Assembly (NCBI GenBank): GCA_965644295.1 | Contig: CBFFRP010000393.1 | Span: 1-49,472, forward strand | DNA: 49,472 nt | Reading direction: 5' to 3' | Origin: Paraphysomonas bandaiensis | Taxonomy: Eukaryota; Protista; Chrysophyceae | In this document: positions 1-44,729 of the stretch, piece after piece | Position numbering within the stretch: position 1 is the stretch's first letter | How the letters are laid out: every line of letters begins with the position of its first letter | Translations under genes and position numbers: made by a program | The notes under the pieces: generated by a model | Database searches by the model: none | The model's input: the letters and a program-made list of their open reading frames with translations, nothing else | What the model was told of the DNA's origin: nothing

Positions 1-2411
1 GACTTGTTGTGCAATGACGATATTCTATTCACGGCGTCTATTACTATTTGCGTGGTCACCATCTTCACCCAGTTGGTCCTACTCACATATTTATTTGTTT
101 TAAGGTTTAAAAATATCCAACTCCCGTTTGCGTTGCCGGATGGGTACAGCGCGATACATGGTTCTGTTCTGTCCTGCTCCGCGTTATTGCTCTTGACCTT
201 CGGGTCATAGCATTCTACGTAGTCCCCGAAAGCCAGTGACAGTTCCTTTTTATAATTGGGTTTCCGACCAGTCAATGCCACTCGCGGTGCTACAGTTGTG
301 CCATTGGTGGATGGCCTCCTCAAGTTCATGCGGCTGTTGGCGTATCTCACCAGGTCTCTGACGTTGGCATCTGGTAGGTTCCATGGTAGCCCTGAATGTA
401 CACTGCGTATTGTCTCTTTGAGTCGCCTAATCTTCGCGTCGATCTTGTCCAGGTGATCTCCAGCCCCTGCCACGTCAATCTCCATCCCTGTGATTTTGCC
501 TCTCAGGGCCTTGAATCCCGGCTGAGGGTCCAGGTAGGTAACTGTCGGTATGTACCCGTAGCTTCTTAACAGGTTTACTTGTTCCTGTAGGGCCAATCCC
601 AACTGATCCGTTGTTTCGTTTTCGAGTGAAGTAACGATGGTTAGTCCCAATGGTTCCGCTAGTGTGAGCATGAACGATTGCTGTCTCACACTGAAGATGT
701 CTGTGTACAGCCTTTGCTCCTTCTGCTGTTCTGCCTTCAGTTCCGGATCCGCGTATTGCCGGCTGACTTTCTTATTCGTCTGCTTGCCTCTCACCGCTTC
801 GAACGGTCTCCCATATATGTCAAAAGCTCTTCTGATATCACTCGGGGTAAGTCGCACCCCTGTAACGTTTCCGTCGCTCACTAGCTGCACAGCATCTCTC
901 TCCGAGTCGAAGCCCGAGTTTCGGATCAGGTCTCGTGCTTCTCGTGCTCTCGCGACTTCTACTTTCGAATATTGGGCTTCGCGCTCCGCTACAGTCGTTA
1001 CGTTGACTTTGGCCGTTGCCCAGTCGCGCATGTCGGCCACATACATCTTGTTCTTTCGATAGAAAGTCAAATCACTGTCAGGTAAGTGCACAGTGAAAGA
1101 CTCTCCCTGCCTATATGTCACTTCATATATGTCTTCTACGTCCGCCTGGCATAGTACGCTTGCCCTTAGCTCATCCGCTGTCTTACAGGTGAAGAATTGA
1201 TCCAGCTCGCCTACATTCGGTAGTTCCAGTGCGTGTCCCGATAATCCCGCCACGGTGCATCCTCTGGACGCCGGTCTTACATTGTTCAGTAGTCTTGGGT
1301 GTACTACCGAGACATCCGCCTGATTGTCGAGTAATACTTCGTACCATTGGAATGGCTCGCTTCCTGACGTGAAGGCGTTCAACATTGTTGTCGTGCAGTG
1401 CTTGTTTTCTGATTCTTGACTGCTGTCTGGACATTCGTTCATTCTGTGGCCTGGCTCACCGCAGCCCCAACATATGAGCTGCCTTTTTTTCTGACCACGT
1501 TTACTGTTGTGCGATTTCGTGTCGTTCCCTTGTTGCTGCTCTGGTGTATCATCGCTATCTGCTGATTTCTTGCCTTTGTCAGACTTCGATTTGCTCACGA
1601 ATGCAGATCCGCCGCCTGCTCTCGTTGCTCTCTTCGGCGTTAGATATTTTGATGCTTTAGTATATATTTCATTTACGTGCGTAGGTGCTGCTTGCGTTCC
1701 CATTGTTAGATCGTTGAGATAGCTAGTTTTGAAATCGCCATATCTCATGTCGTCCAGCCCTTCGAAGAAATCCATCGCGATGTCTTCTTCATTCATTTCC
1801 GCGTTGTTCATGTCTTTGTAGGCTTCTAATAGATGATCAAACCTCTCCTTATAAGTAACTATACTCTCATATGCTCCCTGTTTAGCGTCTTTGTACCTTT
1901 TCCTCGCTTCTGCTCGTACCACTGTACTTACGCTGGAGTTAGTGGATACTTTGTGGGTTTGTTTGATAGCCAGCCATAGTAGTAGAGGATCCTTAGTCCT
2001 GTTCATGAGCTCGTATTCATCTAATAGCTTGACTGCATCCATTGATTCGTGGCTCAGATGGTCTACCATGAATGAGTAGAATGCCGATCTATCGTTCCGC
2101 ATCTTGTCTATTAATCTCCCTCTGGTCTTGGTCTTGTCCTTCATCAGGTCGAGGTTAACTCCATAGGGGTCGTCTTCCAAATCAAAATCCTCTGGGTTTA
2201 TCGCATCGGGCTCATAATATTTGTCCAGCTCTACTAGGCGTGCAAGATCACCGTACTTTTGCATGCCCACCACTACAAGCCTCTGTTTGAATGTGGCGAA
2301 GTTCGAGTTGGCACCGTATCTTAAAGTCGGTACATGTTCTGGTCTATCGGTGCTCGGTTTCTTGCCGAATCTTGCAAATCTTGTTGGCTTGTCGTTCGTT
2401 GTCTTCTTCAT
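1..2411 (-). CDS. Copia gag-pol polyprotein (partial, open past the window edge; absent from the ORF track)
   Basis: Hand translation from ATG 2411 (MKKTTNDKPTRFARFG...). Zinc knuckle CWGCGEPGHRMNEC (~1430-1472), aspartic protease EVLLDNQADVSVV (~1300-1340), integrase core YTDIF...YLDPQ...HLDKIDAKIRRLKETIR...LPW...TGRKP...FGDYV. ATG, knuckle and integrase checked as same frame. Confidence 0.9.
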   Translation of the reverse strand, partial: MKKTTNDKPTRFARFGKKPSTDRPEHVPTLRYGANSNFATFKQRLVVVGMQKYGDLARLVELDKYYEPDAINPEDFDLEDDPYGVNLDLMKDKTKTRGRLIDKMRNDRSAFYSFMVDHLSHESMDAVKLLDEYELMNRTKDPLLLWLAIKQTHKVSTNSSVSTVVRAEARKRYKDAKQGAYESIVTYKERFDHLLEAYKDMNNAEMNEEDIAMDFFEGLDDMRYGDFKTSYLNDLTMGTQAAPTHVNEIYTKASKYLTPKRATRAGGGSAFVSKSKSDKGKKSADSDDTPEQQQGNDTKSHNSKRGQKKRQLICWGCGEPGHRMNECPDSSQESENKHCTTTMLNAFTSGSEPFQWYEVLLDNQADVSVVHPRLLNNVRPASRGCTVAGLSGHALELPNVGELDQFFTCKTADELRASVLCQADVEDIYEVTYRQGESFTVHLPDSDLTFYRKNKMYVADMRDWATAKVNVTTVAEREAQYSKVEVARAREARDLIRNSGFDSERDAVQLVSDGNVTGVRLTPSDIRRAFDIYGRPFEAVRGKQTNKKVSRQYADPELKAEQQKEQRLYTDIFSVRQQSFMLTLAEPLGLTIVTSLENETTDQLGLALQEQVNLLRSYGYIPTVTYLDPQPGFKALRGKITGMEIDVAGAGDHLDKIDAKIRRLKETIRSVHSGLPWNLPDANVRDLVRYANSRMNLRRPSTNGTTVAPRVALTGRKPNYKKELSLAFGDYVECYDPKVKSNNAEQDRTEPCIALYPSGNANGSWIFLNLKTNKYVSRTNWVKMVTTQIVIDAVNRISSLHNK

Positions 2412-2710
2412 AATTTCCTCTTACGCAGAGAAAAATACGGTACTCGGTCGAATGATACGGATGTTACTAATCAATAAACGGACGGAATACCCCCGTTGCT
2501 TTTACACAGTCTACACTACAGGTAGTCAAAGCAAGGTTCTCTTTATAGTTACTACAGAACTTCTCAGTAAGAGGAAATTATGCCTCTATTCTACAGCCGT
2601 ACACTACACACTGCATAATATAACACCATACACCTCTATGTGCCCTATGCATATCTTATACAGTCACTTCAAGTACTAAACTGAAAAGAACATCCTCTCA
2701 TTCCTCTACG

Positions 2711-2802
2711 CACATCACCATGTCCATGTACCTGTCTACCTGTACTGTTGGACACATCACCATGTCCATGTACCTGTCTACCTGTACTGTTGGACACATC
2801 AC
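2711..2802. repeat. 42-bp tandem duplication in the retrotransposon leader
   Basis: CACATCACCATGTCCATGTACCTGTCTACCTGTACTGTTGGA twice, plus the start of a third copy. Confidence 0.9.
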
Positions 2803-3300
2803 CAGCTCTCTCTCTCTGTCCAACACACTCATAACACCACTGCAGTGTCATACACACACACAGTACACTCTACCTCCTCCTAGAAAACCCCCAGACAAAC
2901 TATCGTCTCTCCCTTCGTCTCTGATACCTTGCCGTCATCTTCCTTACACACACTCTCTATGCCTCAGTCTGTACCCCCCTGCACCAACACAGACACTAAC
3001 AAGGGCAGCTGAGGACGTCCGAGTGTCTCCTCCAGACCATCATCATCATCACGATCATCTCGTGCATAGGTCTATCAGAGTACTCGACCTCAGTGACTCT
3101 TGTTCTGTTGCGCAGTCTCACTCTCCTCAATCAGATGTTGCCTCTCTTGCACCATCACACTCCCTCTCGACTCCCTGTAGCTGGACACACCGGATGACCC
3201 TCACATCCCACCCCTGTACAGCTATACACCCTCTTGCATGTGTTCTCTACCGCTGGCTAAGACAGCAAAAGAGCCGATTTCGACGCTTCTTCACAGTAGG

Positions 3301-3308
3301 CCATAACC
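3301..3308 (-). promoter_or_regulatory. Putative primer-binding site (half-tRNA-iMet type)
   Basis: GGTTATGG on the minus strand right after the inferred LTR end. Matches the first 8 nt of the copia-type PBS GGTTATGGGCCC, then diverges. Confidence 0.5.
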
Positions 3309-3755
3309 TTTTGCAAGACCTTCATCCACATACCTCCGAGCCACTTGGAACAATGCCTAAAGGAAGGCCACCAGATCGCCAATCTCAGAAGGGCATATTA
3401 CTGTTTCCCCTAACTGCCATAAGGCTAATAAGTCAGTCCCCGTGAGGTACATAAGGCTATCTATCATATAGCGAGTGGAGTCTCATCCCAAGAGGAGACC
3501 TCCAGATCACACGCGCCGGTGAGTCCCAGGACACACGATCATGGCGAGCCTCATAACACACACTAAGAACGGAAGTGGTTGCACCTTGGTGCTTGCGGCG
3601 ACGCACAAGCAGCTTCTGTAGCGTTAAATAGTAGGATAAAAGAGTTTGTATTGATTAGTTACGGGTAGTAGTCTAACTAGTATGACTAGCATTCTTCTAG
3701 CCACTAATTGGTGCAGGCTTTCAACGCCTATTGCTAAATAATCAGACATTCAATA
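3309..3755 (-). repeat. 5' LTR (~447 bp)
   Basis: Minus-strand ends TATTGAATGTC...GTCTTGCAAAA (imperfect inverted termini). 3473-3755 is strongly similar to 12340-12627, and the left end is shared with copies at ~4667 and 38838. Confidence 0.7.
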
Positions 3756-5173: not shown

Positions 5174-5984
5174 AGAATTGGGGTCAACAAAACACTCATA
5201 TTATCACCGGACAAATATAAACATTCAATTCAATATTTACAATTATCTTTATTAGAAATTGATAGTTTTTCGAATGTGATTTGCTATATTTTAGGGAAAC
5301 AACTTTCGAAAGCATGTCATCAAGCACTCGTAGTTTTGTTCCCTCCTTTTTGTCTGATGTAGAAGATCAGTATGATCTATCATTAACACAATGCTTAAAG
5401 AATATTACTGGAGAATTCAATGACACAGCTAATATGCTGAAAGTGGGAAAACGGAAACTAGACTGTGTACAGATATTAAAAAATCAAGCATCTAAATGTG
5501 CTCATGCAAGGTCTCAATAGTATCTCGCTTACATATGATTGTCGTATACTTGATAATCACGCCCAGTACTTGAACAACTTATCTCCCCTTCCAGTTACTT
5601 TTTTCCACATGGCATAGGCAAGTTTCGTTAGTTACGTAAAGTAAAGTATAGTTCCTATTGGTTGTGTTTATTATTTATTGGGTTGGTTTTATAATAATCA
5701 GAGATAACTTCCAATAAATAAAGACAGATGCCATTCTCTGCAAAAAATAGATGCATCACAGGTAAACTACACAACTAAGACACAAACAACCATACATATA
5801 CACCAATCAAATACTAAACTGTAGACACACAATACAACAAGTACACCGTATAATTCCGATATGGCGGTCAGAGTATTCTTGCTGAATATTTATCTCCATA
5901 TAGGCAACAAAGATAGGAAGAACAATAAAACCAGAATGCTTCATATGGTAATCTCATTACACTACACCAATGCTGTCAGGAGGA

Positions 5985-6345
5985 AACGGAAATATACCAC
6001 TTTCAGGGGAATGCTATTGACTAGTTCTCTGCCATTGATCGAAGGAGGGCACAACACTAGTAGCTGCACCATTCTTGGACGTTTCGAATGTTGCCTTGTT
6101 GGTGTTACCACCAGCAGGAAGTGGAGGGGTACCATATTCAGGGGCGTGTTGCGAATGAGTAGTTCTCTGCCATTGATCGAAGGAGGGTACCACACTAGTA
6201 GTTGCACCATTCTTGGACGTTTCGAAAGTTGCCTTGTTGGTGTTACCACCAGCAGGAAGTGGAGGGGTACCATATTCAGGGGCGTGTTGCGAATGAGTAG
6301 TTCTCTGCCATTGATCGAAGGAGGGTACCACACTAGTAGCTGCAC
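5985..6345 (-). repeat. 138-bp coding tandem repeat (~2.5 copies)
   Basis: GCCATTGATCGAAGGAGGG at 6031, 6169, 6307. Confidence 0.95.
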
Positions 6346-7525
6346 TACTCTTTGCATTTCTGAATGTAGATATACTAACATTGGTAATGGGTGCCATACC
6401 TGCATTACAGTAACGTCCATTCGACTGACTGCAAGTTAGTGCAGGAGTAAGTGGCATTGAATGTGGTATCGACGTTACGTAGGCATTTGATGGCCATAAC
6501 CTATTCGATGAACTTAACACAGAATTTCTGAATGAAGGAGAAAATACACTAGCAGAAGACTCTCCCGAAACAAAATATGGAATCATAGATCCACTACGAG
6601 GCGAAGCAGATGATCGATTATTATTCGATACACTGCGAGTGTCTTTATTCGTAGCAGACGTTAACGAAAGTGAATTGGATTCAGTATGTGTTTTCTGATC
6701 AATAATGACATTGACAACCGCATCCTCCATCACTGTCATGACAACTTCAGATACTTCTTTGAGTACAGTTTCTTTGGGTCTGGCCAAAAGCCAATTGATG
6801 ACAACAGCATCGACACACAGATCAAGTATACACCAGAAGTTACATGCGTATGCTGCTTGGGTTCCATGTGATAAAGTGTTCATCAAGAAGTTGATAAAGG
6901 TAGTACTGAAACTTAGTATCGCGCCGGTTAAATTTTCCCTGGCGAGCACTTGCACAGTTCTAGAATCATTGGCATAATCAAAGAGTGGAGCTATCAATTG
7001 ACACAACATTGTTAGGCTTAGTGATACATCGTAAGCAATTAAAATGATCGACGCTCTATCTAGGATGCCAATATGACATTGTCCATCCTGATCAATGTAG
7101 AACTGAGCCCCCATAATTGCCCATATCAATACAAAAGGACTTGGAACCAACAATGCAATGTTGAATAAATACTGTCGGGAGTGCAGTCTATTCGAGACTG
7201 CCTTATAAAATAAACACCTCGTTCGATGCACAGCTTCTATCAGAAAAATATAAATCAGTATTTTAATGGACACATAAAGTATGACACATGACCATAACCC
7301 AACACGACAATATACATCAGTGTTTGAATGATACTGCATCGGACTAACAATAACCACTTGTATGACAAATACAAGTGATAAGACCAATACAGCGATTCCA
7401 ATATGATCAGATAGACGTATATCATCCATTTTTCTCATGATTTTAACTCTTTTATAGATTATATACAGTATAAGTATAACTGTAACACCTGCCAGTGCTG
7501 TGACTATAATATCAAGCACTGTCAT
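6014..7525 (-). CDS. 7TM GPCR-like protein, paralog 1, with 46-aa PSFDQWQ tail repeats
   Basis: 503-aa intronless ORF with seven hydrophobic segments in the first ~250 aa. Cys at TM3 start (YCRVG) and in ECL2 (GQCHIG), FLIEAVHR at TM3 end, Ser/Pro-rich tail. Confidence 0.85.
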   Translation of the reverse strand: MTVLDIIVTALAGVTVILILYIIYKRVKIMRKMDDIRLSDHIGIAVLVLSLVFVIQVVIVSPMQYHSNTDVYCRVGLWSCVILYVSIKILIYIFLIEAVHRTRCLFYKAVSNRLHSRQYLFNIALLVPSPFVLIWAIMGAQFYIDQDGQCHIGILDRASIILIAYDVSLSLTMLCQLIAPLFDYANDSRTVQVLARENLTGAILSFSTTFINFLMNTLSHGTQAAYACNFWCILDLCVDAVVINWLLARPKETVLKEVSEVVMTVMEDAVVNVIIDQKTHTESNSLSLTSATNKDTRSVSNNNRSSASPRSGSMIPYFVSGESSASVFSPSFRNSVLSSSNRLWPSNAYVTSIPHSMPLTPALTCSQSNGRYCNAGMAPITNVSISTFRNAKSSAATSVVPSFDQWQRTTHSQHAPEYGTPPLPAGGNTNKATFETSKNGATTSVVPSFDQWQRTTHSQHAPEYGTPPLPAGGNTNKATFETSKNGAATSVVPSFDQWQRTSQ

Positions 7526-7775
7526 TATTATATCTGATTAAATAAGACTCATGTAGAAGGGGGGGGAAGGAAAGTATAGAGCACAATCCTGACTTATAAC
7601 GCACCTAATTCCAGAGGTGTTGCTATAGCCCCCATTGCTCTGTGTACGATATGTGGATTCGTCACTTGTCTATCCCTTCAGTCCCTGTCCAGGCCACATA
7701 TGTATGTACTGTACTGTGTATGTATGTATGTATGTACTGCTGTGTATATATACAGTAGTACACTACGTAGTACAT

Positions 7776-7920
7776 ATCGGCATCATTTGTATATTTTTGT
7801 TCAGAGATGCCTCTAATATTGAGACAATAATTATTTGTATTCTAGCCGTATTTATACTGCAGTTATATAGATTATATTTGCTTCATGTTATTACCGAAAA
7901 ATAAGATGCTGACTGCCGAT
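7776..7920. mobile_element. ~145-bp MITE-like dispersed repeat, copy 1
   Basis: Ends ATCGGCA...TGCCGAT. Clear homologs at 28256-28401 and (reversed) 30937-31080. Confidence 0.8.
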
Positions 7921-8186
7921 ACTAGGATATAGACAGCAATAGAATATGGATGGATATATGTACATATGTACATGTGTACGTGTACCTGTGTACGTGTACA
8001 TGTATGTGTACAGACATCCAAACAGCACACCCTCTTCAACGAAGGGACGCTGTCAAGGGAATGGAGTACCTTCTCTCATATATATATATACATACATACA
8101 TGTACCTGCCCTCTTCGTCTTCTCCTTCTCACAGCATCTTAATATACTCACACCTCATATGAATATTATCATACCACAATACACTA

Positions 8187-10520
8187 ATGAAACCACATGA
8201 TATTGCTGTTGAAGTAATATCTTGTATATCTATCCTCCTTATACTCTACTTATTATACTGGCGATTCAATGCATTCACTCACTATACCCACCTCCTTCCT
8301 ACAGACTATATAGGCATTATATTCCTTATCTTATGTCTTATATTCTCTATACAAGCAGCAATAATTGCTGGTATACAAGCACAATCAGGATCTCTTCTAT
8401 ATTGTCGTTTAGGGGACGAAATATCTATTGTCCTTTATATGACCTGTAAGATGATGATATATATATTTCTCATTGAAACTGTACATCGTGTAGCATGTTT
8501 ATTTTATGAAGGAAAGTCTAATAGATTTCAATCCAAACAATATTGTGTTAATATACTTTTGCTAATTCCCAGTGCAGTTATATCTGTATGGGCGATGCTG
8601 AGTACCACATATCACGTCGACGCCCGCGAAATATGCCATTTTGGACTACAGCAAAAAGGGGCAATTCCAGTGATTATTTATGACGCATCATTAAGTGCAG
8701 TTATGGTATCTCAACTACTGCATCCACTGTTCAAGTTTTCTACTGACTCGACCACTGTTCGTTCTCTTGCGAAAAAAAATTTTACTGGAGCTACTCTAAG
8801 TTTCTCGACCGTTATGGGGACTTTCTTAGTCAATACCGCGCGAAATGGAAACCAAGAGGCATATCTAACGTACATTTGCTGCCTTATTGACCTGTGTGTC
8901 GATGCTGTTGTCATCAATTGGCTTTTGGCCAGACCCAAAGAAACTGTACTCAAAGAAGTATCTGAAGTTGTCATGACAGTGATGGAGGATGCGGTTGTCA
9001 ATGTCATTATTGATCCGAAACAGCACACTGAATCCAATTCACTTTCATTAATGTCTGTTACAAATAAAGACACTCGCAGCGTATCGAATAATAATCGATC
9101 ATCTGCTTCGCCTCGTAGTGGATCTATGATTCCATATTTTGTTTCGGGGGAGTCTTCTGCTAGTGTATTTTCTCCTTCATTCAGAAGTTCTGCGTTAAGT
9201 GCATCGAATAAGTTGTGCCGAACGTCTACTCCAAGCAGCAATTCTTCAGGGTCTCCATGTTTAGAAACAGATGTATCCACGAATGACTTAAAATCGAGTT
9301 CTTTGGAGCCATGCCTAAAACCGGGGAGGCGTCTTAGTGGCCAAGGAGGCACCCTATTACCGATTCCTGGTAGTCATAATATGACTCCACCGGGAAATGT
9401 GACGAACGTTGGTGTTGCTAGTGTGAGACGAGTATCTGGTCAGCGGCAGAATGCTAGTCGACCATATAGTATTGACAATTGCAAGACGACACGTGGAAGC
9501 AAAGATTGGACCTTACATTCTGATGGTGCATCAATGGTGCCACCATCATTCGATCAGTGGCAGAGTACTATTAAGCTAAACGACAATGATAGTAGCAGCA
9601 CTCCCGCACTTCCAGATTCCAGAAATAGTGAATTTATACGAGGGAACGTTGGGAAAGGTGACTCTGTGGCACCATCCTTTCATGAGTGGCAGAAATCTAT
9701 TCAGCCACAACCCGTAGTTGAAAGTAAACCCTCTGTTCGTCAGGATGTGTGTACTAGAATAGGTAAAATGGAAGCTGGCGTTGGCCGCGCCGCCCCATCA
9801 TTCGATCAGTGGCAGAGTACTATTAAGCTAAACGACAATGATAGTAGCAGCACTCCCGCACTTCCAGATTCCAGAAATAGTGAATTTATACGAGGGAACG
9901 TTGGGAAAGGTGACTCTGTGGCACCATCCTTTCATGAGTGGCAGAAATCTATTCAGCCACAACCCGTAGTTGAAAGTATTCAGCCACAACCCGTAGTTGA
10001 AAGTAAACCCTCTGTTCGTCAGGATGTGTGTACTAGAATAGGTAAAATGGAAGCTGGCGTTGGCCGCGCCGCCCCATCATTCGATCAGTGGCAGAGTACT
10101 ATTAAGCTAAACGACAATGATAGTAGCAGCACTCCCGCACTTCCAGATTCCAGAAATAGTGAATTTATACGAGGGAACGTTGGGAAAGGTGACTCTGTGG
10201 CACCATCCTTTCATGAGTGGCAGAAATCTATTCAGCCACAACCCGTAGTTGAAAGTATTCAGCCACAACCCGTAGTTGAAAGTAAACCCTCTGTTCGTCA
10301 GGATGTGTGTACTAGAATGGGTAAAATGGAAGCTGGCGTTGGCCGCGCCGCCCCATCATTCGATCAGTGGCAGAGTACTATTAAGCTAAACGACAATGAT
10401 AGTAGCAGCACTCCCGCACTTCCAGATTCCAGAAATAGTGAATTTATACGAGGGAACGTTGGGAAAGGTGACTCTGTGGCACCATCCTTTCATGAGTGGC
10501 AGAAATCTATTCAGCCATAG
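8187..10520 (+). CDS. 7TM GPCR-like protein, paralog 2, with 84/93-aa tail repeats
   Basis: 777-aa intronless ORF colinear with paralog 1 (YCRLG, FLIETVHR, EICHFG, CLIDLCVDAVVINWL). Repeats carry PSFDQWQ and PSFHEWQ. Confidence 0.85.
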   Translation: MKPHDIAVEVISCISILLILYLLYWRFNAFTHYTHLLPTDYIGIIFLILCLIFSIQAAIIAGIQAQSGSLLYCRLGDEISIVLYMTCKMMIYIFLIETVHRVACLFYEGKSNRFQSKQYCVNILLLIPSAVISVWAMLSTTYHVDAREICHFGLQQKGAIPVIIYDASLSAVMVSQLLHPLFKFSTDSTTVRSLAKKNFTGATLSFSTVMGTFLVNTARNGNQEAYLTYICCLIDLCVDAVVINWLLARPKETVLKEVSEVVMTVMEDAVVNVIIDPKQHTESNSLSLMSVTNKDTRSVSNNNRSSASPRSGSMIPYFVSGESSASVFSPSFRSSALSASNKLCRTSTPSSNSSGSPCLETDVSTNDLKSSSLEPCLKPGRRLSGQGGTLLPIPGSHNMTPPGNVTNVGVASVRRVSGQRQNASRPYSIDNCKTTRGSKDWTLHSDGASMVPPSFDQWQSTIKLNDNDSSSTPALPDSRNSEFIRGNVGKGDSVAPSFHEWQKSIQPQPVVESKPSVRQDVCTRIGKMEAGVGRAAPSFDQWQSTIKLNDNDSSSTPALPDSRNSEFIRGNVGKGDSVAPSFHEWQKSIQPQPVVESIQPQPVVESKPSVRQDVCTRIGKMEAGVGRAAPSFDQWQSTIKLNDNDSSSTPALPDSRNSEFIRGNVGKGDSVAPSFHEWQKSIQPQPVVESIQPQPVVESKPSVRQDVCTRMGKMEAGVGRAAPSFDQWQSTIKLNDNDSSSTPALPDSRNSEFIRGNVGKGDSVAPSFHEWQKSIQP

Positions 10521-10660
10521 CCCGTAGTTGAAAGTAAACCCTCTGTTCGTCAGGATGTGTGTAATAGAATAGATAAAATGGAAGCTGGCGTTGGCCGCGC
10601 CGCCCCATCATTCGATCAGTGGCAGAGTACTATTAAGCTAAACGACAATGATAGTAGCAG
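9540..10660 (+). repeat. 252/279-bp coding tandem repeat (~4.3 copies), continuing past the stop codon
   Basis: CCATCATTCGATCAGTGGCAG at 9543, 9795, 10074, 10353, 10605. The 279-bp units carry an extra 27-bp IQPQPVVES duplication. Confidence 0.95.
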
Positions 10661-12165
10661 AAATCTATTCAGCCATAGCCTGGAGATTCATCAGAATGAC
10701 GTTAGTGCACGTCGATTGGAATCCCGCACATGTACAGCGACATCAAATAAAGAGACACATGGTTATAATGCTGCCGGTATTATTCCATCACACGGTCAGT
10801 AGCAGAACACTATTCAATAGCCACTCACTGTCGAATGTGACTTTCGGTACGAATCGAGAATTGCTTGTGTGGCACCCTTGTTCACCAATTTATGGTGTTT
10901 CTCCACATTGGTAATCCTCTATTACCGGGGCCACAATTAGTAGTTTTTCTTTATAGTGATTCGAGGAACCTGCGCTGAATTTTGACCGTATATATAAAAC
11001 ACGTCCATTGGTATTTCCTCTCCTGTTTCAATGCTAAATTGATTTTGTACTATTCTTTTATATACATAATATGTATATGTAAATAATTACTCTGCCTTCA
11101 TAGTAGCAGTGCTATGTAGTATTAATGTTCTAGTGCTTGTTTAATTTAAGATCTTGCTGGTTAAAATTCACATCCCGAAGTCGCCGTAATCCGTAATGTA
11201 GTATCTTGTAATTGAGTTACTAGATATATGGATTTGTGTAGATATGTAAAAATTGGACCAGTAAATTCCATGATTTAAGTGTTTAATTTATGAGCTCTAG
11301 TTACTGGAGATAAATTTATAATTTATGACATTAGAAATCGACAGATATCCCATTTTATATACCACAATTTTCGGAGTTCCATTCGAATTTTTTAATCTTA
11401 AAGAGTAAATAGTATATTGAGCATAGTATATCATTATCCCCATTTTGCCTCAAAAAAAGCTTTTTTTTGACTTGATTTTGTCTCAACAGGGCGCTCATAT
11501 CAGTACCAGGCAAATATAGACATTCAACTTCAATATTCGGTTCAACAGAAGCTCACTTCTATCTTCATTATGATAATGACAGTCATATGTACGTGATTTC
11601 ATTATAGTACGCAATTATAGAGAAACCACAATCATAAGCCTAATATCAAGAGCAGATCATCTAACTCCAAGTTATATTCCATCCTTCTACTGCTGTAGAA
11701 GTTCATAATGAGGTCAGTGCAAGTGATCTGTCTTCATATCCAGGACTTCGAAACAACTTCAAGAATATTACAGGAGAGTTTAAGTACCATATCTGATGCT
11801 ATATAGGTGGTTAGGAGCAGTGGCACCCAGTTGTTTCAGTTGGAGCCATATCGTGCTTCTCAGGATATTGTGTGTCTCATATCATACACACATCTTTCGA
11901 TCAGGTACACTTGCAGAGGTAAAGCCTGCTGTATATAAATGTGATGATGATGCTAATTAAGGCAATAAGAAGCCTCTCTCTCACCTTCAACTGTTGACAT
12001 TTATCATCACACTTACAGTATACATATCATTCATTTGAAACTATATGAGTTCTCATTTGTGTTATTAATGTAATCAAGGAACATCTATTTCTTAATACAG
12101 CAAGCATGCTACAAATAGATATACAATGTAATATTAACTTTTCAACGTCATGAGGATAAGCTACA

Positions 12166-12285
12166 ATTTAACCTAGGGATAAGGAGTATCGTACCTTGTC
12201 TAAATTTTAAAACTCGGGCTTTTCGCCCTCGTTTCAAAATTTTGAGCGCGGGACGATATAGCCTCCTTATTGCCCGTGGTTAAAT
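12166..12285. repeat. ~120-bp imperfect palindrome (foldback element)
   Basis: Paired arms: ATTTAACC/GGTTAAAT, ATAAGGAG/CTCCTTAT, TATCGT/ACGATA, AAATTTT/AAAATTT, GGGC/GCCC around a TTTTC loop. Confidence 0.8.
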
Positions 12286-12339
12286 ATAACTATAGTTGAT
12301 AATTTTAATGATGCATATATGCGACAATATCATCAATCA

Positions 12340-12627
12340 GAGCCAGGCGGAACCTTATCCCAAGGGGAGACCCCCGGACAACAAGCGCCAGTGAGTCCTC
12401 AGACACACGAGCAGGGCGAACTCACACACAACAACAAGAACGGAAGTGGTTGCACCTTGGTGCTTGCGGCGACGCACAAGCAGCTTCTGTAGCGTTAAAT
12501 AGTAGGATAATAGAATTTGTGCTGATTAGTTATGGGTAGAGGTCTAACTAGTAGATCTAGCATTCAACTAGCCACTATATCGGAACGAGTTTTTAACGCC
12601 TATTGCTAAATAAAAAGACATTCAATA
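12340..12627 (-). mobile_element. Truncated or solo LTR of the copia family
   Basis: Near-identical core AAGAACGGAAGTGGTTGCACCTTGGTGCTTGCGGCGACGCACAAGCAGCTTCTGTAGCGTTAAATAGTAGGATAA and the same terminus GACATTCAATA as at 3755. Confidence 0.85.
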
Positions 12628-13429
12628 TGGCATATAATGATATCTGTAGCACCATGACGAATCTGGACAAGTTCATTATAATACTTCACAATAAATTTAT
12701 GAAAATATATTGCCGTATGCTATTCGAGAGAGATAAACGAACAATCTAGATTGACATAGACTAATGAATTAATCGGATTATTTCAGGTCAAAATGGGTGC
12801 TATTATTATTTAGGTAGGTACATCAGCCATCAGTATGTAAGAGCCACCATAAACCATAGAGGCCTCACAAGTCTATACGTCTATGCTGCATTATTATGTC
12901 GTTTTATAACAAGTACTTTTGTACTGCTTCTTTTCGTGCAGTTTTCCTCAAGGATACATAACTACAGTGCGTACTTTGCCAATTGTAAACGCACAATAAC
13001 TCATGGTATTACTATAATTTCAAGTAAAACGAACACATTATTCATTAATACGGATTAACAATGATGAATATGTATGCACAAGAATAGGCGGTCAAAAATG
13101 CACAGTCTATAGACTTGAGAGGATAATGCGCAGGGACCAATCATATGTATATTAAAAATGATCAGGAATTTAATATTCATAAACAATACGGAGAAAGCAT
13201 CTCCGGAAAAAGGTATTCCGAAAATCACAATCATGGCAGGGCAGTGCTTCCAAAAGATTCACTAGAAAGAGTGCCTTGTAATGTACCTTGGTAAACGAAT
13301 TAGTACCACTGTAGCCGTAGTGTACCATATATCGAGAAAACGGTGATGATTCTCGATAAAGGCACAATCGCTAGGGCAACAACATTTAGTGGTCCGTCAA
13401 TCACTCCGGAATCGGAGAGATACCGTGTT

Positions 13430-14773
13430 GACTTTGTCTCCTGGCTGAACAGTGCTCTACCACTGACCACTTGAAGGGGGCCCACCACCAACAGCACAAC
13501 CACTTGGCTTACTGGACGATGCCGACTGGCTGTTACTGATGGTAGGGTGTAAAGGGACTTTAATATCATCAGATGATGGCGGCTGAATAGCATTTTGCCA
13601 CTGATCGAATGACGGTGCAATATCAACACCAGCACCATTACGACCCGCAGAAGAAAGTGGTGGGACACCGTGTTGAACTTTGTCTCCTGGCTGAACAGTG
13701 CTCTGCCACTGACCAATTGAAGGAGCACAACCGCCTGGTTTATTGGATGATGTAGACTGACTATTATTGATGGAGGGATGTAAAGGGATTTTAATATCAT
13801 CAGATGATGGCGGCTGAATAGCATTTTGCCACTGATCGAATGACGGTGCAATATCAACACCAGCACCATTACGACCCGCAGAAGAAAGTGGTGGGACACC
13901 GTGTTGAACTTTGTCTCGTGGCCGAACAGTGCTCTGCCACTGACCAATTGAAGGAGCACAACCGCCTGGTTTATTGGATGATGTAGACTGACTGTTACTG
14001 ATGGAGGGATGTAAAGGGATTTTAATATCATCAGATGATGGCGGCTGAATAGCATTTTGCCACTGATCGAATGACGGTGCAATATCAACACCAGCACCAT
14101 TACGACCCGCAGAAGAAAGTGGTGGGACACCGTGTTGAACTTTGTCTCCTGGCTGAACAGTGCTCTGCCACTGACCAATTGAAGGAGCACAACCGCCTGG
14201 TTTATTGGATGATGTAGACTGACTATTATTGATGGAGGGATGTAAAGGGATTTTAATATCATCAGATGATGGCGGCTGAATAGCATTTTGCCACTGATCG
14301 AATGACGGTGCAATATCAACACCAGCACCATTACGACCCGCAGAAGAAAGTGGTGGGACACCGTGTTGAACTTTGTCTCGTGGCCGAACAGTGCTCTGCC
14401 ACTGACCAATTGAAGGAGCACAACCGCCTGGTTTATTGGATGATGTAGACTGACTGTTACTGATGGAGGGATGTAAAGGGATTTTAATATCATCAGATGA
14501 TGGCGGCTGAATAGCATTTTGCCACTGATCGAATGACGGTGCAATATCAACACCAGCACCATTACGACCCGCAGAAGAAAGTGGTGGGACACCGTGTTGA
14601 ACTTTGTCTCCTGGCTGAACAGTGCTCTGCCACTGACCAATTGAAGGAGCACAACCGCCTGGTTTATTGGATGATGTAGACTGACTATTATTGATGGAGG
14701 GATGTAAAGGGATTTTAATATCATCAGATGATGGCGGCTGAATAGCATTTTGCCACTGATCGAATGACGGTGC
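13430..14773 (-). repeat. 231-bp coding tandem repeat (~5.7 copies) with alternating A/B variants
   Basis: Period 231 (TAATATCATC at 13561, 13792, 14023...). Units alternate INN...QPGDK and ISN...RPRDK. Confidence 0.95.
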
Positions 14774-15904
14774 TACATTGGATGCAGTGTCCAGCGTCTC
14801 AGTGAGATGGTGGTGGGCGGGAGGGCTCGAAGATGGTCGGCTATGGAATGACGACCTTGAACTGTGGTCACTTAGTGGTGGCGTAGAAAACCTGGTGGTC
14901 CTGAATGAAGGAGAGAAGACACTCGGGGGGGATTCTTCGCGAATAAAGTAAGGAATCATGGACCGAAAAGAAGGAGAATGAGATGCGTTGATGCTTTTCG
15001 GGCTGGGCTCATTGTGTCTGAGCGGCACCTCAGTTGGGGCTGAACTATGACTACTAGGCTTAATGGGATTCTGATCAAAGATCACATTAACAACTGCATC
15101 TTCCATCACTGTCAAGACAACCTCGGACACTTCCTTGGCAACAGTTTCTTTTGGGCGGACCATTAGCCAATTAATGACTACTGCATCTACACCAACATCA
15201 AATAAACACCACAAGAAGCATACACTACTCGGTTGGTGCCCATGCGCTAATGTATGCGTCAACAAGTTTGAAAAAGTAGTTGACAAACTCAAAAGTGAAC
15301 CAATCAAATTCTTGAAGGCCAATGTATTAACCGTCTTGGATTCAGGAGAAAATTGAATCAATGGAAACATGAACTGTGATACAGTTACAAGGGAGAGCGA
15401 TGCGTCGTAAACTATCAACGGGACAGATGCTCTGTCTTGCAATCCAAAATGACATTCCCCATTGTTGTCAACAAAGTGCTTCCGGCTCATCGCAGCCAAT
15501 ATCAGTATTCCAATACTGGGAAGTAATAAGGTCATGTTGATCAAATACTGCTTCGATTCCAGCCTAGATGTCGTTCGTTTGTAGAAAATACAGGACATTC
15601 GGTATACTGATTCGATGAAATATATGTAAATAAGAATTTTGCAGCATAAATAAATCGTTAGACAAGTCCACAAACCCAAATTACAATAAAAAGCAACATC
15701 ACTATGGGACAAAAAGGCGGTTATTAGGCATACTTGAGCAACAAAGATGAGAGATAATACGAGAACTATAACACCAATATAATCAGAGACAAGCATACCA
15801 TCCGTCGCACTACGAAGCTCAATGTATCGCAGATAGATGAGATAGAGAATACCAACAAATATGAAACTTGATAAGGTCTCTAATATAATCAGAGAAGACT
15901 GCAT
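13457..15904 (-). CDS. 7TM GPCR-like protein, paralog 3, with 77-aa tail repeats
   Basis: 815-aa intronless ORF (YCNLG, YFIESVYR, GECHFG, WCLFDVGVDAVVINWL, RPKETVAKEVSEVV). Repeats carry PSFDQWQ and PSIGQWQ. Confidence 0.85.
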   Translation of the reverse strand: MQSSLIILETLSSFIFVGILYLIYLRYIELRSATDGMLVSDYIGVIVLVLSLIFVAQVCLITAFLSHSDVAFYCNLGLWTCLTIYLCCKILIYIYFIESVYRMSCIFYKRTTSRLESKQYLINMTLLLPSIGILILAAMSRKHFVDNNGECHFGLQDRASVPLIVYDASLSLVTVSQFMFPLIQFSPESKTVNTLAFKNLIGSLLSLSTTFSNLLTHTLAHGHQPSSVCFLWCLFDVGVDAVVINWLMVRPKETVAKEVSEVVLTVMEDAVVNVIFDQNPIKPSSHSSAPTEVPLRHNEPSPKSINASHSPSFRSMIPYFIREESPPSVFSPSFRTTRFSTPPLSDHSSRSSFHSRPSSSPPAHHHLTETLDTASNVAPSFDQWQNAIQPPSSDDIKIPLHPSINNSQSTSSNKPGGCAPSIGQWQSTVQPGDKVQHGVPPLSSAGRNGAGVDIAPSFDQWQNAIQPPSSDDIKIPLHPSISNSQSTSSNKPGGCAPSIGQWQSTVRPRDKVQHGVPPLSSAGRNGAGVDIAPSFDQWQNAIQPPSSDDIKIPLHPSINNSQSTSSNKPGGCAPSIGQWQSTVQPGDKVQHGVPPLSSAGRNGAGVDIAPSFDQWQNAIQPPSSDDIKIPLHPSISNSQSTSSNKPGGCAPSIGQWQSTVRPRDKVQHGVPPLSSAGRNGAGVDIAPSFDQWQNAIQPPSSDDIKIPLHPSINNSQSTSSNKPGGCAPSIGQWQSTVQPGDKVQHGVPPLSSAGRNGAGVDIAPSFDQWQNAIQPPSSDDIKVPLHPTISNSQSASSSKPSGCAVGGGPPSSGQW

Positions 15905-18194: not shown

Positions 18195-19457
18195 CTACTG
18201 AGCCTTCTTGCTCTCTTTTATTTGACTCTCGGAAGTTTCAGCATTAGGTCCGTCAATGTCGTCGTCATCATCATCAGATCGCTCATCTTTCTCAATGCCT
18301 GTGGTGAGAAGACGATAAATCATCTTCGAAATGAGATAAAACCAGAAAACATGTAGTAATTGAAGGGCCATCAGTAAACCGAAGTAAATCCAAAAGCCCG
18401 TCCAATTCGAACCCATAGACCCCTCTACAACCACATAAGAGGAATAAAAAACCCAATAAGGGTATATCACAAGTCGAAGAACGAAGAATGATATGGCAAA
18501 TATTGCGAATAGAACATCACATAAGTGACTCCAGTACTCGCGGCCTTTCACTTTAGAGACATAGTTGACGACCTTCGCTGACTCCAGGAATACATCAGAG
18601 GGATCGTGCAGTATAAGGACGGTGGTCCCTATGCGAGTGAAGTTGCACAAATAAGAAAGAACTATCAGAAATATAGTAACAATATGATGAATGATCATTT
18701 CAAGGCTGTCGGATCGAGATACATCAGTCCAAAGCAGCTGGTGGAAGTATGCACCAAGTTCCACGAGGTAATAGTACTTTACCATTGGGTACACAGGCTG
18801 CATTGGCCATCCTGTCCAATGGTCCTCTGTCCGTAAAACCCAAGGTACAGGGGTTGGAACAAACAATGTGTAATAGCCCATTATGCAGAATGCAGTGTAG
18901 AATATAAATCGCCACGAGGCTTCGATAAATTTGACCATCTTCTTATTCTGTACAAGAGAGCGCCGACGGGACCATATCTCATCATTTACCTCTTCAATAG
19001 ACATTCCTGTCTGCTTAGATATACTCTCAATTTCTTGTTTCTATAAATTGTGACGTTACATGCACGGAACAAGGAAAGTGCACACAAAGAGAGACTTACA
19101 GAAAGTCGAGTTTTTGAACTCTTTACTCTCGCAGCTATATCTTTATGAACCTTGATATCAACCGCGTCTAATTTCAAGGCATATATCGCCAAAGGCTGCG
19201 CATGTATAAGATAGCTACGCAATAAGCAACACACAGCTTACCTTGAATAGTATTTGCTGCAGTACTAGTCGACACAAACTAAGTGCCAGGCAGTAAAATA
19301 AAGACGGGTATAGTTGTGACAATTTCGTGAAATGGCCTTCTGCAGCCATAGCATCTATATGAGGAAGATCTAGAGTAATATACTCTGGACTAGATATATA
19401 TTGAATATAGTTTGAAGGGTGTTCAAAGTATGACACAATGGCATTTATAGTATCCAT
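18195..19457 (-). CDS. LAG1: Ceramide synthase (LAG1/CerS, TLC domain), 3 exons
   Basis: Exons 19457-19242, 19195-19100, 19040-18195 with GT-AG introns. KFIEASWR, Lag1 motif RSDSLEMIIHHIVT...LHDPSDVFLE, DERSDDDD acidic tail, C-terminal KKAQ ER-retrieval signal. Confidence 0.93.
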
Positions 19458-41002: not shown

Positions 41003-42188
41003 TTAACTATTCTCTCCCAATATATCCGTAGACATCACCTCAGCAGAGGTTGGTTTGTCTTGGATCACGGCCGCTATCCTGTCTACTGCTGATTTGACCA
41101 TGGAGCTTGGGGCACCGCCGGAGTGGTACAACACCAGACCACTGGCCGCAAGAGCAAAAGCCAAATAATATAGCCAATGCACGGCATTTCCAAATACTAA
41201 ATACGCTATAGCTACTGCGTACGCATCTGAGGTTAGGAGGGATAAATTGAACAATGCAGCATCGTTAGCCTTTAGAAAGACAGAAGTATTGCAGTACATG
41301 AGGAAAAGGCACACTACGAATCCTGCGGAGAATGAAACAGACTCGTAGCCCCAGTACACAGAAGTTATCTTTTTCAACTCGAAGGCTGCCATCTGAACAC
41401 CAGATATGAGCGCTCCATTTAACCCAAGCATTCCGAGAAATTCTATACGGTTATGACTCTTCACGAGAGTTTCCTGCAGAACGTTGGATGCAGCATATAG
41501 ACAAGCGCCAATCTAAAGAGAGTGATTGATGAGATGAGCATATATAATGTAAAATTAAACCCACCAGACATAGCACATCTCCTTTAAGAGGCTGGCTGGC
41601 AGCAGAGTCAGAATTTGACAGCGTATCTGAGTACACTACACAGCCCAACCCAAGAAGACATATGACCACACCACCCAGATGATAGCGATTATATGTTGCT
41701 CCTAAAAATACAACCGACAGTAACATCACGCAAGGTATTGTAAAGCAGTCTAGCAACATTATAGAAGTAACAGATGTGTAATTGTAAGCTGATATAATCA
41801 GAACATTGGCTTCCACGTCGAGAAGTGCAGCCACAAAATACACCCAAAACGGCCACTGCAATCTAATACCACAAGACCACCATTTCTCTACACACATATC
41901 AATCTCACGATTATATAACAACCTCACAATATGTAGTGATAGAAAGAAATAATTAAAGAAACTGAGCATCATCGGACAGTTTGCTTGTTTAGATGCTAAT
42001 AATGATGCAAAGAGTGCCGTTCCAGATATTAATAATGATATATATTGTCCATGTAGTAATGGTGTGATTCTTTGTATCCATTTCATATGACAGATTCCCT
42101 CTTTATCGATAGTAGCAGGAGGTCTATTAAGATTCTGTGTGTTGTCTTCATCAGATATTAACTCGTAGTTGTTCATGACAGCTGACAT
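41003..42188 (-). CDS. SLC35F: SLC35F-family (F1/F2-like) DMT transporter, 2 exons
   Basis: GQYISLLISGT, LLDVEANVLIISAYNYTSVTSIMLLDCFTIP, GDVLCL, NVLQE, EFLGMLGLNG, FNLSLLTSD. Intron ~41514-41563. Start uncertain (42209/42188/42176). Confidence 0.9.
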
Positions 42189-42367
42189 GGGAAGTTCATT
42201 CAAGAACATATTAAGAATATGAGATGCATATGATGTATATGTATAGATGAATAGATTGGGATTAGATGGATTGGTGTATGTATATGTATGCACCTTAATG
42301 GGGTTTATAGATGTACTGCTCTATCATAGTGTTGTACATACATACATACATGCATGCATAGTACATG

Positions 42368-42928: not shown

Positions 42929-44729
42929 ATGTCTGGTTGTTTTGCTGAACGCATCGAAATACTTCCTGGTAAGAATAAGATGATCATTACAACCTCATTA
43001 ATTAATGCTTGTTTATGAATAGGCCAATTATATTTTTGTTGCAAAGATGATAATAAGGCTCTGGAAACCTCACAGAAGTACATATACTTTTCAACTGATA
43101 ACACCCTGCAATACACTGCATTCTTCGCTGACTTTGGACCATTGAATATTGGACTTACGTATAACTTTTGTGAACAGCTTGACACACTACTGACTCAATC
43201 AAGTGTCGAGAGAAAACCAGTAATATACTACTCATCAACACACCCTCACAAACGGGCAAATGCAGCCGTATTGCTATGTGCCTACTTGGTATGTGGCTAC
43301 ATATAGAAAGAAAGATTGTGTTAACACCTTATGATGGTGCAGATTTTTGTAAAAGAATTAACAGTGGAGCAGGCATATGCCCCTTTTATTGGTACCATGT
43401 GCTTTATCCCTTCCTCACTCTAGATAACTCTTTTCTGCAGGAATCACACCGATGCTGACAACGTTTAGGGATGCTGCTTTCTGTATCAACACTTACCCGG
43501 TTACTGTACTTGACTGTACTCGCGCCTTTTATCGAGCTCATTGTCTGAAACATTTCGTATACTCAACGTTTGATGTTCACAAACATGACCATCTCGCTAA
43601 ACTAGAGAATGGAGATGTTTCGTGGATAATTCCTGGAAAGTTCGTCGCCTTTAGTGGTCCTACCAGCGCCCCCCGTGAACTTTCCCCTGGAGTCTTTGCA
43701 TTGTCTCCGGAAGGTTATGTTCCTCTATTCAAGAGTCTTGGTGTTACTTGTATTGTCCGGTTCAACAAGAAATGTTACGACAGGAATATATTCGTACGGG
43801 CTGGAATTCGTCATGTAGATCTCTACTACGAGGACGGAGGCAACCCTTCTGATTCTATTCTTCAGGTAGCGTTCCATAAACATGTGCATTTCATTTTATT
43901 GAATTCCCTACTGCAGGCGTTTCTTACCACGTGCGAAAAGGAGAAAGGTGCTATTGCAGTACACTGTAAAGCAGGTCTTGGACGAACTGGAACCAATATC
44001 GCAGCCTACATGATGAAGCACTATGGCTACAGTGCAAGAGAAAGCACAGCCTGGTGTCGGGTATGTCGCCCTGGTTCTGTGGTTGGCCCACAGCAACAGT
44101 ATTTGGAGACAATTCAAGAACGTATGTGGGAAGAGGGACGTATATACAGAAATGAAGCCCGCGGGACAAAGGGTGATAACGGAAGTGCACTACCCTCCAC
44201 TGGGAAGACATCCCAGACACATATTAGGAGAAAGTCTAGTGGAAGTGCGCGCTCATCTGCGGAGACCGTTGAGAGTTCTCTGACGGCCCGACTTCTACGA
44301 AATCATCAGCGGCAAGCGCATCGCACGAATGACGGCGAATCAGCTGTGCGAGCGACAGCATCAGGGCGGGCGCGATCAGAAGATTTCCTGAAGCGGCCAA
44401 ACACGTCAGGCGGGGCAAGTGGTGATATCAGTAACAGCAGAAATTCTGGCGGAGAACATGCCCGACAGAAATTAGTTGTGGAAGAGCGACCTAAGACCTC
44501 TTCTCGAGCTGCAAGTGGTAAGATATCCACGGAGTCCTCTTCACATCTGCCGTCAGCGAGTAACGGTAGTCGCGATAAGAAGTCTTCCACCACTGGAGGT
44601 CTATGGGCATCCAGAACGCATTCCCCCAGCGGAATCAAGGCCAACAGTACGAGCTTGAGTCGAAGGAATATTGTGCGTAAAAATAGTTCATCCGGTAGTG
44701 CTAAACGACCAGCAAATAAATATGTTTGA
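42929..44729 (+). CDS. CDC14: Dual-specificity phosphatase CDC14, multi-exon
   Basis: A-domain FFADFGPLN, KRANAAVL, FRDAA; ENGDVSWIIPGKF; catalytic VHCKAGLGRTG; RPGSVVGPQQ. Confidence 0.95.

Follow-up and report, generated by a model that had tools for sequence, protein, structure and literature searches.

The 49,472-nt contig CBFFRP010000393.1 of the chrysophyte Paraphysomonas bandaiensis (assembly GCA_965644295.1), referred to here as the window, contains three intronless genes (A, B and C) that encode seven-transmembrane (7TM) proteins with long repetitive tails. Each tail carries several copies of a short aromatic motif with the consensus P-[ST]-F-D-Q-W-Q. The best explanation is that these proteins are 7TM receptor-like sensors with a multivalent, partner-recruiting motif tail, and that they are part of an eight-locus subfamily, restricted to this species, of a widespread and undescribed eukaryotic 7TM family. 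We consider this combined interpretation to be probable on balance.

Genes A, B and C are intact open reading frames (ORFs) without internal stops, encoding proteins of 503, 777 and 815 aa, respectively. Their first 275 residues share 47-51% identity and include a near-invariant block after the last hydrophobic segment. An earlier sequence-only reading of the window had described three intronless ORFs with a common 7TM domain, a conserved block following transmembrane helix 7 (TM7) and motif-bearing repeat tails, and all of these elements are confirmed. The features of the three genes are as follows (all coordinates are positions on the contig).

6014-7525 (-): gene A, 503-aa 7TM protein with three motif copies, stop TAG
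6782-7525 (-): gene A, seven-helix domain (aa 1-248)
6704-6814 (-): gene A, TM7 end and helix-8 block (aa 238-274)
6527-6583 (-): gene A, conserved linker element (I-P-Y-F ... S-P-S-F-R)
6017-6334 (-): gene A, repeat array of 46-aa (138-bp) units, with motifs at 6305-6325, 6167-6187 and 6029-6049
7526-8186: spacer of 661 bp between the divergently oriented genes A and B (coordinates only), presumed to be a shared promoter region
8187-10520 (+): gene B, 777-aa 7TM protein with eight motif copies (P-S-F-D-Q-W-Q and P-S-F-H-E-W-Q in alternation), stop TAG
8187-8930 (+): gene B, seven-helix domain (the sequence used for the structure model)
8898-9008 (+): gene B, TM7 end and helix-8 block
9129-9185 (+): gene B, conserved linker element
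9534-10517 (+): gene B, repeat array of 84/93-aa double units, each with two modules
13457-15904 (-): gene C, 815-aa 7TM protein with 11 motif copies and a truncated 12th (P-S-F-D-Q-W-Q and P-S-I-G-Q-W-Q in alternation), stop TAG
15158-15904 (-): gene C, seven-helix domain
15080-15190 (-): gene C, TM7 end and helix-8 block
14900-14956 (-): gene C, conserved linker element (aa 317-335; coordinates worked out by hand)
13460-14779 (-): gene C, repeat array of 77-aa (231-bp) double units

The pattern P-S-x-x-x-W-Q (in the window genes P-S-[FI]-x-x-W-Q) is found three times in A, eight times in B and 11 times in C; the degenerate 12th copy of C ends after its Trp at the stop. Tandem Repeats Finder identifies 2.5 copies of a 138-bp (46-aa) unit in A (93% matches), 3.0 copies of a 279-bp (93-aa) unit in B (99% matches; the first unit is 84 aa) and 5.5 copies of a 231-bp (77-aa) unit in C (97% matches). 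These values agree with the unit lengths (46, 84/93 and 77 aa) and motif counts (3, 8 and about 11) first read from the letters. Back-translated P-[ST]-F-D-Q-W-Q occurs 46 times in the 62.5-Mb genome, always within loci of this family, and a reversed control pattern has 0 occurrences, so the repetition goes far past what chance would give.

A profile of the three domains detects 11 loci in the genome, all with a domain that runs through without interruption: the three genes of the window, a copy of gene A on contig C384, a head-to-head pair (D and E) on C146, a tandem pair (F and G) on C199 and three short-tailed members. Eight of these loci have motif tails, with 3, 8, 11, 10, 8, 10 and 10 copies in A to G, respectively; the three short-tailed members lack the motif. 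Some of these genes are represented among transcript-derived peptides. Peptides of MMETSP1103 (taxid 36769; a Paraphysomonas transcriptome according to the listing in 10.1101/2024.05.15.594285) match the coding sequences of paralog F and one short-tailed paralog exactly, which identifies the genome as that of a Paraphysomonas, a colourless, phagotrophic chrysophyte. Further MMETSP peptides are encoded near-exactly by paralog G and a second short-tailed paralog. EukProt peptide P0001, listed without a transcript name, is an exact 265-aa fragment of the gene C product (aa 124-388). Exact full-length A, B and C proteins are absent from the public protein collection.

When the tails are cut at each motif, the seven genes provide 17 distinct unit types, 33-50 aa long (for this alignment, the 87-aa first unit of D was shortened to 46 aa). 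The P and W of the motif are present in 100% of unit types, the F and the last Q in 94%, the inner Q in 88%, the S in 76% and the D in 71%, while flanking positions farther out are 18-35% conserved. Weaker features of the unit are a Val at -2, [ST]-[IV]-Q-P after the motif and prolines at about +20 to +24. A T-P-P-L-P-like proline patch lies approximately 14 residues past the motif, with prolines at +20 and +23 in 53-59% of unit types. The tails as a whole consist of 68-78% polar or disorder-promoting residues and are presumably intrinsically disordered.

Codon comparisons between genes separate the motif from its surroundings. In 427 between-gene comparisons of 25-codon windows (7 motif and 18 flanking codons), motif codons show 974 synonymous vs 498 replacement differences and flanking codons show 856 synonymous vs 5951 replacement differences (odds ratio ~13.6, which is descriptive, as the pairs are not independent). 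Individual flank positions have 57-94% replacement differences, whereas the Pro codon of the motif has a synonymous difference in 79% of pairs and a replacement in none. The same heptapeptide is spelled with different codons in different genes. Because the motif codons differ mostly synonymously, the flanks are mostly replaced and the codon spelling varies, the heptapeptide is maintained by purifying selection on the protein among the paralogs of this species, and not by recent DNA identity. Its conservation far above that of the flanks, in both the 17 unit types and the codon comparison, bears out what the sequence-only reading had suggested. By the criterion of a conserved core, unconserved flanks and selection at the peptide level, the tail can be classified as a putative array of short linear motifs (SLiMs).

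These comparisons also bear on the proposal that the repeats are neutral minisatellite expansions in a disordered tail, with a heptapeptide that is common to the genes through recent ancestry and gene conversion between paralogs. As would be expected of such expansions, the DNA of units within an array is 93-99% identical, neighbouring paralogs can be shown to have undergone gene conversion, the stops of B and C fall inside a repeat unit and recognisable repeat sequence runs on past the stop in all three genes. Between genes, however, the flanks are almost fully diverged while motif codons differ mainly synonymously, and the use of different codons for the same residues is a pattern that requires selection on the peptide. 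Neutral expansion is disfavoured by these data and we regard it as highly improbable.

Similarity between the units of different genes extends beyond the motif. Post-motif parts give Z-scores of 7.6-8.1 for the unit pairs D2/E1 and F2/G3 and of 4-7 for several others, which argues that the module is ancestral and the motif is not convergent. All arrays are built from one ancestral module of approximately 40-46 aa, consisting of the motif and a proline-rich patch, and a convergent origin of the motif is rejected. Recent amplification has often copied two old modules, already diverged from each other, together as a double unit (B, C, D and G). The original suggestion that the tails amplified one motif independently must accordingly be divided: the module was inherited (Z up to 8), but recent expansion and homogenisation are specific to each gene.

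A second alternative is that each ~40-46-aa unit folds on its own or self-associates as a small module (Trp-cage or polyproline-like), such that the array forms a stalk, a spacer or a condensate-forming region instead of docking another protein. The roughly maintained unit length (36-46 aa) is compatible with a module of this kind, as is the fairly fixed distance of the +20 and +23 prolines from the Trp. Nevertheless, several unit types (B2 and G2/G4) have the heptapeptide without the proline patch, and the spacers are uneven in length, with many S, G, N and Q residues. A mini-fold is therefore an unlikely function of the repeats.

The arrays have changed recently. A, B and C all end at TAG. 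In B it stands in place of the Gln of Q-P-Q, and in C in place of the Gln of W-Q. Reassignment of TAG to Gln was considered and rejected because a neighbouring ORF of 2283 codons is open under the standard code. Beyond the stop of B lies the following element.

10521-10800 (+): repeat remnant past the TAG of gene B, in frame, with ~46 near-identical codons and an intact motif at 10605-10625

After this extra motif, there is a degenerate copy with a stop at the Trp codon. The remnant suggests that the array was recently truncated by a nonsense mutation, is polymorphic or is read through. A second case is provided by the 9-kb contig C384, on which a copy of gene A and its downstream flank (373-3351) is 95-98% identical to the window over ~2.8 kb. 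This copy has one more 138-bp unit (four motifs at the DNA level) and loses its frame after the first motif. Homology to the window stops upstream of gene A, and gene B was not found beside the copy, which may be a haplotype variant, a recent or segmental duplicate or an assembly error. Since the two near-identical copies differ in unit number, copy number changes on short time scales. The variability of copy number proposed at the outset is thus supported both by the range of 3-11 across A to G and by the additional unit of the C384 copy. Long ORFs overlie the arrays in other frames or on the opposite strand (5861-6439 (+), 5962-6420 (-) and 13300-14748 (-)); most likely they are a product of the repeated stop-free unit, and they do not count as evidence of genes.

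The block that follows TM7 is 81% identical among the seven long-tailed paralogs, compared to 32-60% in their helices and 11% for the same block over the whole family. It is also kept in a short-tailed paralog on C435 and is a signature of the subfamily. A second conserved element (I-P-Y-F ... S-V-F-S-P-S-F-R) is located in the linker preceding the arrays. Nucleotides 706-1000 of the A and B coding sequences, spanning the TM7 end, helix 8 and linker, are 94-99% identical, in contrast to ~56% elsewhere (TM region). This tract has two arms that form an inverted repeat between the head-to-head genes.

6526-6820: A-side arm of the A/B gene-conversion tract (~295 bp)
~8892-9186: B-side arm of the same tract

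The D/E pair is 92% identical in the same block. Part of the A/B identity after TM7 is thus the result of gene conversion and not of selection. The conserved post-TM7 block recognised in the sequence-only reading is near-invariant across A, B and C, although its identity between A and B must be discounted to the extent of this tract. An ORF at 8711-9352 (-) is antisense to the TM7-to-linker region of gene B.

The membrane domain is predicted to have a GPCR (G-protein-coupled receptor)-like fold, as had been proposed. An AlphaFold2 (AF2) model of the gene B domain made with 53 homologs has seven long helices (pLDDT 90, pTM 0.85); it replaced a run with three sequences that was uninformative (pLDDT 52). 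The model includes a beta-hairpin at residues 140-154 between helices 4 and 5, in extracellular loop 2 (ECL2), and an extra helix at residues 251-269 (helix 8) of lower confidence (53-64). In a Foldseek search of the PDB, the best 50 matches are all GPCRs, comprising class A peptide receptors and class C receptors (E-value ~1e-4, TM-score 0.47-0.62). The closest ESM Atlas neighbours are unnamed fungal proteins (TM-score 0.83-0.84), with bacterial 7TM sensor modules and TAS2R lower. In the modelled structure, the general 7TM fold is secure; kinship to GPCRs specifically is not.

Two cysteines identified in the sequence-only reading as a receptor-like pair are present over the 53 homologs. C73 (Y-C, at the start of TM3; gene B numbering) is invariant and C150 (C-H-x-G, in ECL2) is at least 90% conserved, and the two presumably form a disulfide bond. 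K88, E97, R113, D166, N212 and D235 are also conserved, as are C228 and C232 in TM7 with D235. Because there is no conserved TM7 Lys for retinal, a microbial (type I) rhodopsin is rejected. The mean number of Lys and Arg residues per sequence is 14.1 in the even loops and post-TM7 segment vs 4.2 in the odd loops, and the conserved cysteines are in the odd loops. By the positive-inside rule, this bias and the location of the cysteines indicate that the N-terminus is outside and the C-terminus inside, and so the tails are predicted to be cytoplasmic. Only 2-4 residues precede TM1, so any ligand must bind the helical bundle or its loops.

The TM domains of class A and C GPCRs (such as the somatostatin and opioid receptors, CaSR and TAS1R) resemble those of A, B and C in their seven helices with an outside N-terminus and inside C-terminus, and also in their TM3-start and ECL2 cysteines, ECL2 beta-hairpin, helix 8 and long, presumably disordered C-terminal tail. 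In contrast, structural alignments to these receptors have 9-16% identity with no detectable sequence relationship, and the DRY and NPxxY motifs are absent from the A-C family.

Outside this genome, a profile of the domain matches 637 cluster representatives at E≤1e-3, of which 287 remain at the stricter E≤1e-10. Among them are protist proteins from MMETSP and from metagenomes, as well as many proteins of fungi, labelled only as "hypothetical", "uncharacterized" or "integral membrane protein". A word-indexed profile search retrieves eight proteins, none of them named. Among 53 family members searched against Pfam (E≤1), there are only scattered single matches and no family in common, the named GPCR families considered including 7tm_1/2/3, Frizzled, Dicty_CAR, STE2/3, Git3 and Pth11-type receptors. 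Weak Pfam matches in the tails of the full proteins (FANCM-MHF_bd with 26.8 bits and no single stretch passing, TrbM, PDE8 and others) were rejected as artefacts of summing over repeats. A PDB sequence profile search with the domain gives no match. The first impression that no named family matches is upheld by these Pfam, PDB and word-indexed searches. As the domain has 637 unnamed relatives, no Pfam domain and no solved structure matched by sequence, it is undescribed but not an orphan, and the description of A, B and C as three orphan receptors fails on both counts: there are 11 paralogs in the genome, eight of them with motif tails, and hundreds of relatives elsewhere.

The TM domain has true homologs (E-values 1e-15 to 1e-57) in the unnamed 7TM proteins of fungi and protists (Fusarium, Zalerion, Microbotryomycetes, Mucoromycota and others), with predicted structures at a TM-score of 0.83-0.84 and the same conserved cysteines and charged residues. 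Unlike the long-tailed Paraphysomonas paralogs, these proteins have neither the helix-8 block nor a motif array. A 2025 census of fungal GPCRs left many 7TM clusters without a Pfam domain unclassified (PMC12842992). No paper tying Paraphysomonas to GPCRs was found in the literature. Among the best 150 of the 637 domain matches, the motif is present only in peptides of the same species, and a search with the tail against 5.8 billion clusters finds only paralog G, also of this species. A metagenome scan for the back-translated motif gives 14 contigs with one match each, which are taken as chance, and no arrays. Little weight can be given to these negative array searches, since repeats of this kind interrupt short-read assemblies. 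Outside the genome, the TM domain was thus recovered in both protists and fungi, but motif arrays were found in this species only.

The proposed model for the A-C family is as follows. The protein would consist of almost no N-terminal ectodomain, a GPCR-fold bundle, the conserved helix-8 block and a long disordered cytoplasmic tail. The bundle would sense a small ligand from outside the cell or from the membrane, and several copies of a cytosolic partner would be recruited by the tail, acting as a multivalent array of SLiMs. Within each module, the P-[ST]-F-D-Q-W-Q core would be held by selection, a looser proline patch would follow it and the remainder would drift freely, with unequal crossing-over and gene conversion altering the number of sites between genes. 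Ligand sensing, G-protein coupling, the docking partner and the tuning of avidity by copy number proposed in the sequence-only reading are the parts of this model that we infer. A more specific form of it is offered tentatively, as a possibility: the heptapeptide may be a previously unknown docking motif by which the receptor couples ligand or prey sensing to endocytic, cytoskeletal or condensate-forming machinery, with a valency set by repeat gain and loss.

Multi-copy SLiMs in disordered regions are exemplified by the DPF motifs of Eps15, the DPW motifs of epsin, the W-box (P-W-x-x-W) of amphiphysin and SNX9 and the W-x-x-x-F/Y motifs of PEX5. Endocytic adaptors with repeated aromatic motifs (DPF, DPW and W-box) and the PEX5 repeats are the nearest functional analogies. 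As in the Paraphysomonas tails, a short aromatic core is repeated in a disordered region rich in S, P, G and Q, with drifting spacers and variable copy number; F-D-Q-W preceded by Pro also resembles the aromatic-x-x-aromatic spacing of the W-box. Eps15, epsin and the W-box proteins are soluble adaptors, whereas the Paraphysomonas array is carried by a 7TM membrane protein. Docking motifs are found in receptor tails as well, including the Homer-binding P-P-x-x-F of mGluR1/5 and the three immunoreceptor tyrosine-based activation motifs of CD3-zeta, for which site number matters. By analogy, A, B and C may likewise be membrane receptors with docking peptides in a cytoplasmic tail. However, the mGluR1/5 and CD3-zeta tails have one to three sites that are not recent tandem arrays, while Paraphysomonas has up to 11, and its copy number differs between paralogs and between two near-identical gene copies.

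A number of observations weigh against this model. In VIA-align, microbial rhodopsins, TMEM87A and Ste2 reach the same Z-scores (15-18) as many class A receptors and a designed GPCR-like fold; as proteins other than GPCRs score as highly, the fold alone is no proof of G-protein signalling. Neither the full proteins nor the 53 family members match a GPCR Pfam family. In favour of the model, G-alpha genes exist in the genome (at least four loci), and the receptors may couple to G proteins; complex prediction for the receptor domain with one G-alpha has a score of 0.00, which without controls speaks neither for nor against coupling. The searches of other organisms gave no ortholog with the motif, and so conservation of the motif is shown solely among the paralogs of one species. 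The MMETSP and EukProt peptides include no match for gene A or B. The layout of a Trp followed by prolines could be intramolecular, as in the mini-fold alternative, rather than two docking sites. Finally, we know of no nameable SLiM that the consensus equals exactly.

The first two of these points are shared by a third alternative, in which the 7TM domain is a trafficking or scaffold protein (TMEM87/GOST-like) or a transporter-like protein and the tail recruits coat or adaptor proteins for sorting. TMEM87A (Z 17.0) equals any GPCR in VIA-align, an ectodomain is lacking, and coat and adaptor proteins are typically bound through repeated aromatic motifs. Against this, the best 50 Foldseek matches are exclusively GPCRs, the cysteine pair of TM3 and ECL2, the ECL2 hairpin and helix 8 resemble those of receptors, and the luminal GOLD domain of TMEM87 proteins is absent from the A-C family. 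A trafficking function is doubtful, if worth keeping in view, and the receptor-like sensor with a motif tail is preferred.

What is new here is a putative receptor of GPCR-like fold whose motif tail may vary in valency, and the TM family to which it belongs is undescribed as well. If the more specific form of the model is correct, this would be a receptor class with an evolvable, variable-valency output in a phagotrophic flagellate. If the model holds, the TM domain would define a large family of eukaryotic 7TM proteins with a GPCR-like fold and more than 600 cluster representatives in fungi and stramenopiles; without a Pfam model, solved structure or name, it would add a further "dark" receptor-like family to the GPCR map. 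The subfamily could serve as a natural experiment on linear-motif valency, as its receptors are otherwise alike but carry between 1 and 11 copies of the same strictly conserved heptapeptide, in arrays that unequal crossing-over, gene conversion and nonsense mutations continue to alter. The identity of the partner would provide a new motif-domain pair and show how a unicellular predator wires 7TM sensing inward.

One of the G-alpha genes (C141:102500-104800, at 680-1759 (+) of that stretch) is intronless and encodes a 359-aa protein with an unusually extended C-terminus. This protein starts with M-G-A-C-S, a likely myristoylation/palmitoylation site. Three neighbours of the receptor genes in the window, listed below, have no obvious functional link to them.

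18195-19004 (-): TLC-domain (ceramide-synthase-like) protein
41003-42293 (-): SLC35F-type transporter, split across two overlapping ORFs (intron or frameshift)
43452-44729 (+): dual-specificity phosphatase

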